NCBI GenBank assembly: GCA_044892505.1
Contig: JBJFYY010000010.1
Location: 1-64,000, forward strand
Source of the DNA: Schmidtea nova
Lineage: Eukaryota
Length of the DNA: 64,000 bases
Direction: 5' to 3'
Shown: positions 7,167-7,652 of the stretch, in pieces
How positions within the stretch are numbered: the first letter of the stretch is position 1
How the letters are laid out: each line of letters begins with the position of its first letter
Notes under the pieces: generated by a model
Seen by the model: only the letters and a program-made list of their open reading frames with translations
Databases searched by the model: none
Told to the model about the DNA's origin: nothing
Translations under genes and position numbers: made by a program

Positions 7167-7652
7167 ATGAATTTAACTTCTATAAAAAACGACATAAATT
7201 GTAGATTAAAAATGTCAACCATACATTGCAGCATTTGTTTAGAAAACTGTTCCACTTCATTCGCAAAATTATCACAATGTCGTCATGAATTTTGTGAAAG
7301 TTGTATTAAAGGCTGGATGGAATATTCTTCGACATGCCCATTAGATAGGTCAATAACAGAAACGATTTTAATATATAATAATCCCGTGGAAAGAATTTTA
7401 ACAGGCACGGTTACTGTTAAAAAACAAGACGACGAATACCAAGACGATTATGATGATGATTCACAATACTTTCATTATGACTTAGTACATTATCTACTGG
7501 ATGATGATCATGAAATGGATGATGATCATGAAATGGATGATGATCATGAAATGGATGATGAATCTGGTCATAATTTAGAAATTTTCTCTGATGACGAAGA
7601 AATTGACACACTCACAAGTGACATCATAATAGAAATCGTTATTACAAATTAA
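7167..7652 (+). CDS. RING-finger (C3HC4-type, CPxDR variant) protein with acidic DDDHEM-repeat tail; IGS copy 1
   Basis: CSIC-x12-CRHEFCESC-x10-CPLDR; probable start at the second Met (7212, aaaATGt); intronless, intact in all three units. Confidence 0.75.
   Translation: MNLTSIKNDINCRLKMSTIHCSICLENCSTSFAKLSQCRHEFCESCIKGWMEYSSTCPLDRSITETILIYNNPVERILTGTVTVKKQDDEYQDDYDDDSQYFHYDLVHYLLDDDHEMDDDHEMDDDHEMDDESGHNLEIFSDDEEIDTLTSDIIIEIVITN

Follow-up and report, generated by a model that had tools for sequence, protein, structure and literature searches.

A RING-type gene copy, with flatworm relatives, in ribosomal DNA spacers of Schmidtea nova

The ribosomal DNA (rDNA) spacers within a 64,000-nucleotide stretch of the Schmidtea nova genome (GenBank assembly GCA_044892505.1, contig JBJFYY010000010.1, positions 1 to 64,000 of the forward strand; hereafter the window) carry a plus-strand open reading frame (ORF) of 161 codons, located at 7167-7652 in the first rDNA unit, which is a real RING-type gene copy and not a chance ORF. 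By sequence comparison this ORF belongs to a flatworm-specific and previously unnamed family of small proteins with an N-terminal RING and an acidic tail. It is most likely still a working gene, or was one until very recently, a reading that is based on the divergence from paralogues, in which protein-level constraint on the RING is apparent. To our knowledge, the 45S rDNA repeats of animals very rarely harbour protein-coding genes, and a search of the literature yielded no account either of a gene carried in flatworm rDNA or of a small RING/acidic-tail family.

The reading frame and its three copies

All rRNA genes of the window are located on the minus strand according to Rfam, with 18S genes at 3504-5305, 13276-15077 and 27729-29530, and 5.8S and 28S genes below each. 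The ORF lies antisense to these genes in three units, and the distance from its start to the 5' end of the 18S gene is exactly 1862 bp in all three. A first-pass annotation of this DNA had described the presence in three units, the antisense orientation and a difference of one residue among the copies, all of which were borne out: the second copy is 100% identical to the first, while the third carries a single base change, C7473 to G, representing the sole difference among the three copies. The further proposal that the ORF resides in every rDNA spacer holds for the three spacers of the window, which are those of a degenerate cluster, although public runs contain this spacer too (see below). 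Over 3268 bp, identity among these spacers is either complete or 99.76%; the spacer of unit 3 differs from that of unit 1 by six substitutions and one 2-bp gap, with one of these differences falling inside the ORF. The additional copies and the component parts of the ORF are as follows:

16939-17424, plus strand: ORF copy 2, identical
31392-31877, plus strand: ORF copy 3, one base difference (H103D)
7212-7652, plus strand: probable conserved coding sequence (146 amino acids plus stop), placed from the starts of relatives and the loss of the upstream ATG in a paralogue
7167-7211, plus strand: in-frame N-terminal extension of 15 codons, common to no relative, probably 5' leader
7224-7349, plus strand: RING finger, C3HC3D cross-brace (Pfam, invariant columns, PDB profile matches, AlphaFold and Foldseek)
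7362-7421, plus strand: family-conserved beta-hairpin (ILIYN ... ILTGTVTV) after the RING (alignment A1; predicted strands)
7422-7649, plus strand: disordered acidic tail with a Y-hydrophobic-DD motif, three DDDHEM repeats (7489-7560) and the C-terminal hydrophobic stretch IIIEIVI

The possibility that the ORF arose by chance, or is an artefact of low-complexity spacer DNA, derives some support from the tail, in which part of the sequence consists of an 18-bp tandem repeat. However, the longest ATG-initiated ORF in 2000 spacers simulated by a first-order Markov model, matched in composition to the 3268-bp spacer, had a mean length of 69 amino acids and a maximum of 152, and none of the 2000 simulations reached 161 amino acids. 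Furthermore, the RING scores above the Pfam gathering cut-offs, full-length homologues occur in other flatworms, and the differences from paralogues exhibit a codon-position bias. The probability of a chance origin is consequently considered negligible.

Domain organization and flatworm relatives

Two Pfam models match residues 20-61, i.e., zf-RING_2 (E=1.3e-8, 35.5 bits against a gathering cut-off of 27.3) and zf-C3HC4 (E=1.1e-7, 32 bits against a cut-off of 21). The zinc ligands C21, C24, C38, H40, C43, C46, C57 and D60 are arranged in cross-brace spacing, and the eighth of these is the Asp of the CPLDR motif, which is invariant in all family members (alignment A1), thus defining a C3HC3D finger. 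The earlier description of an N-terminal C3HC4-type RING is therefore correct as regards the domain and its location, but not as regards the ligand type, while the described (DDDHEM)3 acidic tail was recovered and is encoded by the above-mentioned 18-bp tandem repeat. Positions that usually contact the E2 enzyme are also present, i.e., Ile23, Trp50, Pro58 and Arg61, the last of these directly after the final ligand; the role of such residues in E2 contact is established for RING ligases. By sequence, the best PDB profile matches are RNF4 (1.9e-15) and the RING of equine herpesvirus EHV-1 (7e-9).

An AlphaFold model built from a seven-sequence alignment presents residues 1-75 as a RING followed by a beta-hairpin, with a predicted local distance difference test (pLDDT) score of ~90, the hairpin strands being predicted at model residues 51-55 and 63-70 (pLDDT 87-91) and the tail being disordered. 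Foldseek aligns ~45 residues to many RING structures with a root mean square deviation of 1.0-1.5 Å, at E-values of only ~1e-2, the domain being short; Foldseek against the PDB and a feature search of the ESM Atlas returned generic RING matches only. Within the tail, the family-conserved motif Y-L-L-D-D-D (7456-7500), in which hydrophobic residues are followed by acidic ones, resembles by eye a SUMO-interaction motif, as does the C-terminal IIIEIVI (7615-7649), which is flanked by acidic and Ser/Thr residues and is predicted by AlphaFold as a strand at low confidence.

A word-indexed protein search with the ORF returned no matches, and an exact look-up of its product among called genes was likewise without a match. 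An exhaustive phmmer search yielded 480 matches at E<=1e-3, most of which are generic RINGs, the top ones being full-length relatives. These relatives, P0001, P0003, P0005, P0010, P0035 and P0057 (E=6e-20 to 1e-8), align their residues 1-133 to residues 16-149 of the ORF, and the closest, P0001, comprises 158 amino acids and exhibits 45% identity (E=6e-20). A profile search added named tapeworm proteins of Hymenolepis weldensis, H. diminuta and Rodentolepis nana, those of the latter two species being designated 'RING-type domain-containing proteins'; P0057 itself is ACTXT7_016814 of H. weldensis. Together these constitute a flatworm family of small RING/acidic-tail proteins of ~150-250 amino acids. 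Members share an N-terminal RING, a hairpin and an acidic tail with Y-x-x-DD, and the zinc ligands, the Pro and the Asp of the RING are invariant (alignment A1); all family-invariant residues are intact in the rDNA copy.

The ORF resembles this family in the start Met that immediately precedes the first pair of cysteines, the C3HC3D finger with CP-x-D, the hairpin of the form I-x-I/Y-N ... G-x-L, the Y-x-x-DD acidic tail and the overall size (~146-254 amino acids), yet identity amounts to only 26-50%, and the rDNA copy has an extra upstream in-frame ATG as well as its own DDDHEM repeat. The genomic setting also differs, as the tapeworm genes contain introns and reside in ordinary chromosomal DNA with no rRNA gene nearby, in one case as a tandem pair adjoining a WD40 gene, whereas the ORF is located in an rDNA spacer. 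The contigs that encode the closest relatives are short (0.8-1.8 kb), and none carries an rRNA gene.

All full-length relatives align their own residue 1 to Met16 of the ORF (phmmer; alignment A1). Furthermore, in the contig of one paralogue (type 1, see below) the upstream ATG is changed to AAG at 7168, and indels totalling 13 nt are present between 7171 and 7202. Because the relatives begin at Met16 and this paralogue type has lost the upstream ATG, with 13 nt of indels beside it, the coding start is placed at Met16, and the conserved coding sequence probably corresponds to 7212-7652.

A scan of metagenomes for related loci returned only the L002/L008 contig and generic RING domains. The P0003 gene is located on the soil metagenome contig Ga0307474_10290050 (L002), where four 40-bp tandem repeats at 139-303 terminate 17 bp ahead of the start codon. 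P0003 was recovered from two soil metagenome assemblies, of JGI and ENA respectively, and the contig carries no rRNA gene. This context hints at a high-copy, repeat-embedded location in the host of P0003. Two proteins from Logan contigs, P0013 (325 amino acids) and P0014 (514 amino acids), are encoded by AT-rich genes and combine an N-terminal CPLDR RING and hairpin with an extended helical central region and a further, C-terminal RING-like finger. These may represent a sister family in related organisms.

The RING had been described in the first-pass annotation as resembling those of the PHRF1/SCAF11 type. Resemblance to a PHRF1-type RING is indeed apparent: P0018, named 'PHD and RING finger domain containing protein 1' in Hymenolepis microstoma, a name that is source annotation and not a tested assignment, exhibits 40% identity over 77 residues (pairwise E=9e-15), and the CPLDR of the ORF conforms to the CP-x-D-R ending of PHRF1. 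Unlike PHRF1, the ORF possesses neither a PHD finger nor a long C-terminal region, Pfam returning RING models only across the 161 amino acids; one Rodentolepis protein combines a RING with a weak PHD match. The RING of SCAF11, a protein with a long SR-rich C-terminal region, may be similar as well. Orthology to either PHRF1 or SCAF11 was rejected, as the ORF lacks both a PHD finger and a long tail, the tail that it does have being acidic and disordered, and the nearest kin constitute the separate small family described above. RNF4 and herpesvirus ICP0-type RING E3 ligases provide the best sequence matches among solved structures, and the ORF has in common with them the residues for E2 contact and an Arg that follows the final ligand. 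In the SUMO-targeted ligase RNF4, however, the order of domains is the reverse of that in the ORF, whose SIM-like (SUMO-interaction-motif-like) tail motifs are read by eye only.

Paralogues and constraint on the RING

Public contigs were compared with the window over 5600-8570, and the paralogue changes reported here are those among the differences listed. The spacer and its ORF were found with zero differences in three samples of one study, X1, X2 and X4, where the contigs of X1 span 5600-7527 and 7532-7908, while run X5 of a second study provides two identical 151-nt pieces over 7111-7404. The same runs contain at least three diverged paralogue types whose flanks are unlike the spacer. Type 1, aligned over 7128-7356, exhibits 28 substitutions and gaps that are all upstream of Met16; type 2, aligned over 7205-7421, exhibits 35 substitutions and no gap, and its contig runs on in frame as PKSSNDNDDD, comparable to PKSTNDND of P0001; type 3 is visible from summed depths. 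Over the RING, the nearest types are ~84-87% identical to the ORF. The ratio of spacer to paralogue depth is ~5:1 in X2, ~1:1 in X1 and ~1:7 in X4, values which, the library kinds being unrecorded, may reflect expression, enrichment or copy number. In X1 a single contig links the presumed external transcribed spacer (ETS) to the ORF at uniform depth, which fits the ORF-bearing spacer being the common type in that sample.

The differences common to paralogue types 1 and 2, among those listed, are third-position synonymous changes in nine of nine cases. Under neutrality, synonymous changes would account for 19% of all single-base changes and 33% of transitions, and the probability of nine out of nine is accordingly 3e-7 to 5e-5. 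The related locus L001 carries the paralogue state at six of these nine sites, and therefore those changes, which are mostly T to C, are assigned to the rDNA copy's own branch. Across the RING, paralogue type 1 exhibits ~12 synonymous and four amino-acid changes among the differences listed, and the ratio of non-synonymous to synonymous substitution rates (dN/dS) between the window and L001 is ~0.18 over the first 57 codons, with dS near saturation. As read from these substitution patterns, the divergence from the same-genome paralogues shows past protein-level constraint on the RING. The changes on its own branch raise the GC content at third codon positions to 0.24 in the rDNA copy, compared to 0.12 in L001; between 7205 and 7356, synonymous sites occupied by T or A in the two paralogue types, and mostly also in L001, are C or G in the rDNA copy. 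GC-biased gene conversion inside the rDNA array could account for this rise.

The explanation that we favour, with moderate confidence, is that a member of the family was copied into the spacer, has spread with the rDNA unit and is still, or was until recently, under constraint. A number of observations weigh against it. Across the entire spacer, identity among the three copies amounts to 99.8-100%, and therefore their intactness is uninformative on present selection; the sole difference within the ORF is non-synonymous, and the density of differences there equals the spacer average. The synonymous bias could predate capture if the donor copy was lost or has escaped sampling. In X2, the presumed ETS is covered ~7-fold more deeply than the ORF and, should this library be DNA, only a minority of units would carry the ORF-bearing spacer. 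The rDNA cluster of the window is degenerate, the 3' untranslated region is minimal, the sole candidate poly(A) signal being an ATTAAA that overlaps the stop codon, and transcription, translation, ligase activity and a link to rDNA biology are all inferred. A Nextera-type adaptor sequence was observed on a contig end of X2 at position 5822; this library may be transposase-based, which would explain its very uneven depth along the rDNA unit.

Several of these observations would equally be expected of a silent passenger, i.e., a recently captured copy that is unexpressed in RNA polymerase I (Pol I)/nucleolar chromatin, has remained intact through its youth and concerted evolution, and bears a signature of selection that was acquired before capture. 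Copies as alike inside the ORF as in the spacer, with a non-synonymous change as their only coding difference, are consistent with such a passenger, as are the minimal 3' flank, in which subrepeats begin 12 bp past the stop codon, and the defective state of the rDNA units in the window. However, the level of identity to the nearest paralogue types leaves no young donor visible, and the six shared synonymous changes on the rDNA copy's branch are accompanied by no shared amino-acid change. The intact family-invariant residues likewise speak against this reading. We regard a silent passenger as the main alternative and a serious possibility, albeit a somewhat improbable one.

Spacer anatomy, proposed capture and possible implications

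The spacer of unit 1 and the adjoining 18S side contain the following features besides the ORF:

3504-5305, minus strand: 18S rRNA gene of the unit downstream of the spacer (Rfam SSU_rRNA_eukarya, 1714 bits)
5306-6150, minus strand: presumed 5' ETS, with its upper boundary inferred from a GC drop and a step in X2 depth
6512-6799: two 148-bp spacer repeats, the tail of which recurs at 6940-6983
6831-6945: two ~60-bp spacer subrepeats on the 18S side of the ORF block
6940-6983: repeated 44-bp tail of the 148-bp repeat, immediately adjacent to the ORF block
6984-7664, plus strand: unique block carrying the ORF, with ~180-230 bp upstream of the ORF and 12 bp downstream of its stop codon
7665-7858: three to four ~60-bp subrepeats on the far side of the ORF block
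7859-8096: 119-bp repeats
8116-8329: 43/86-bp repeats
8517-8573: 11-bp repeats

The ~680-bp ORF block splits a single family of 60-bp subrepeats, which resume immediately past it. Because the block interrupts these subrepeats, diverged paralogues occur with other flanks, and the tapeworm relatives are intron-bearing chromosomal genes, the earlier suggestion of a captured E3-ligase-like gene is plausible as regards capture, the ligase activity being putative. Carriage by a mobile element, whereby the ORF would be the cargo or remnant of a Polinton-like element, a giant retroelement or a non-LTR (non-long-terminal-repeat) element that landed in the spacer, has in its favour that the window is full of rDNA-specific retrotransposons. 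Against this, the ends of the block at 6984-7664 exhibit neither inverted nor long terminal repeats, and they are devoid of a poly(A) tract and of a duplicated target site; moreover, a tblastn search of the window with the ORF product found no further copy in its retrotransposon-rich remainder, and the nearest relatives are stand-alone small genes. This route is accordingly deemed very unlikely.

Returning to the favoured explanation, that of a captured family member under continuing or recent constraint, one family copy together with ~200 bp of upstream sequence would have been inserted at the DNA level into the field of 60-bp subrepeats, and would now be replicated and homogenised together with the rDNA unit. 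Transcription by RNA polymerase II (Pol II) would start from the unique 5' block and translation from Met16, yielding a putative RING E3 ubiquitin ligase whose acidic tail, with its possibly SUMO-interaction-like motif, may select basic or SUMOylated nuclear partners.

Moving away from the 18S gene, GC content drops from ~0.39 to 0.29 near 6100, and contig depth in X2 falls from ~9000-22000 to ~1300 at ~6150-6200; the stretch between the 148-bp repeats and the 18S gene is the GC-richer one. Based on the GC drop and the depth step, the pre-rRNA start is likely at about 6110-6150. Should this placement hold, the ORF is situated upstream of the presumed Pol I start at a distance of ~1 kb, is directed away from it and shares no sequence with the precursor, its antisense character then being a matter of orientation alone. 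A short motif is common to the probable precursor start region (6110-6133) and the 148-bp repeats (6522-6545), and these repeats may represent spacer-promoter duplications, as in other animals.

Immediately beyond the 11-bp repeats, at 8572/8573, the spacer of unit 1 passes into internal sequence of the 28S insert (R2-site) of unit 3, the sequence at 8572-9045 being 100% identical to 23025-23498 (474 bp). The 28S gene of unit 2 does not extend beyond Rfam model position 2355, a truncation that is attributed to this spacer-insert junction, which leaves a dead rDNA unit produced by a deletion or by recombination. Past unit 3 the window enters retrotransposon arrays, and rDNA-specific retrotransposons are abundant throughout. 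At 18763-22108 and 34000-60000, the far spacer of units 2 and 3 gives way to retrotransposon ORFs, flanked by masked (N) stretches that recur every 4851 bp.

Coding sequences have been found in rDNA of other lineages. Yeast TAR1, for example, is a lineage-restricted ORF, not known to contain a classical domain, that lies antisense within the 25S gene. The nearest precedent is the primate protein RIEP, the product of PAPAS, an antisense RNA from the rDNA spacer; its coding sequence overlaps the rRNA promoter and contains no known domain (PMC9992852). The ORF of S. nova resembles both in residing within the rDNA repeat, where it is encoded on the other strand than the rRNA. It differs from them as a member of a conserved-domain family that forms a discrete insert in the non-transcribed spacer, oriented away from the presumed Pol I promoter. 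These known rDNA-encoded cases are lineage-specific ORFs overlapping rRNA sequences and do not belong to established enzyme families.

If the ORF is expressed, a ligase gene would be present in each rDNA unit, with its dose tied to rDNA copy number and its sequence homogenised by concerted evolution, and it would provide a natural test of whether Pol II genes work inside nucleolar chromatin. The amplification to rDNA copy number and the dosage or rDNA-silencing relevance put forward in the first-pass annotation are accordingly conjectural. A further, unlikely extension is that of a functional Pol II-transcribed RING E3 gene residing stably in the spacer, whose acidic-tailed product would act back on nucleolar chromatin or on basic ribosomal or histone proteins, thereby creating feedback between rDNA dosage and ubiquitin signalling. 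As planarians permit RNA interference and in situ hybridisation, the question of Pol II gene function in this setting is directly testable. The present analysis moreover defines a small, as yet unnamed flatworm RING family, and the context of P0003 hints that other species, too, may carry a family member at a repeat-borne, high-copy location.
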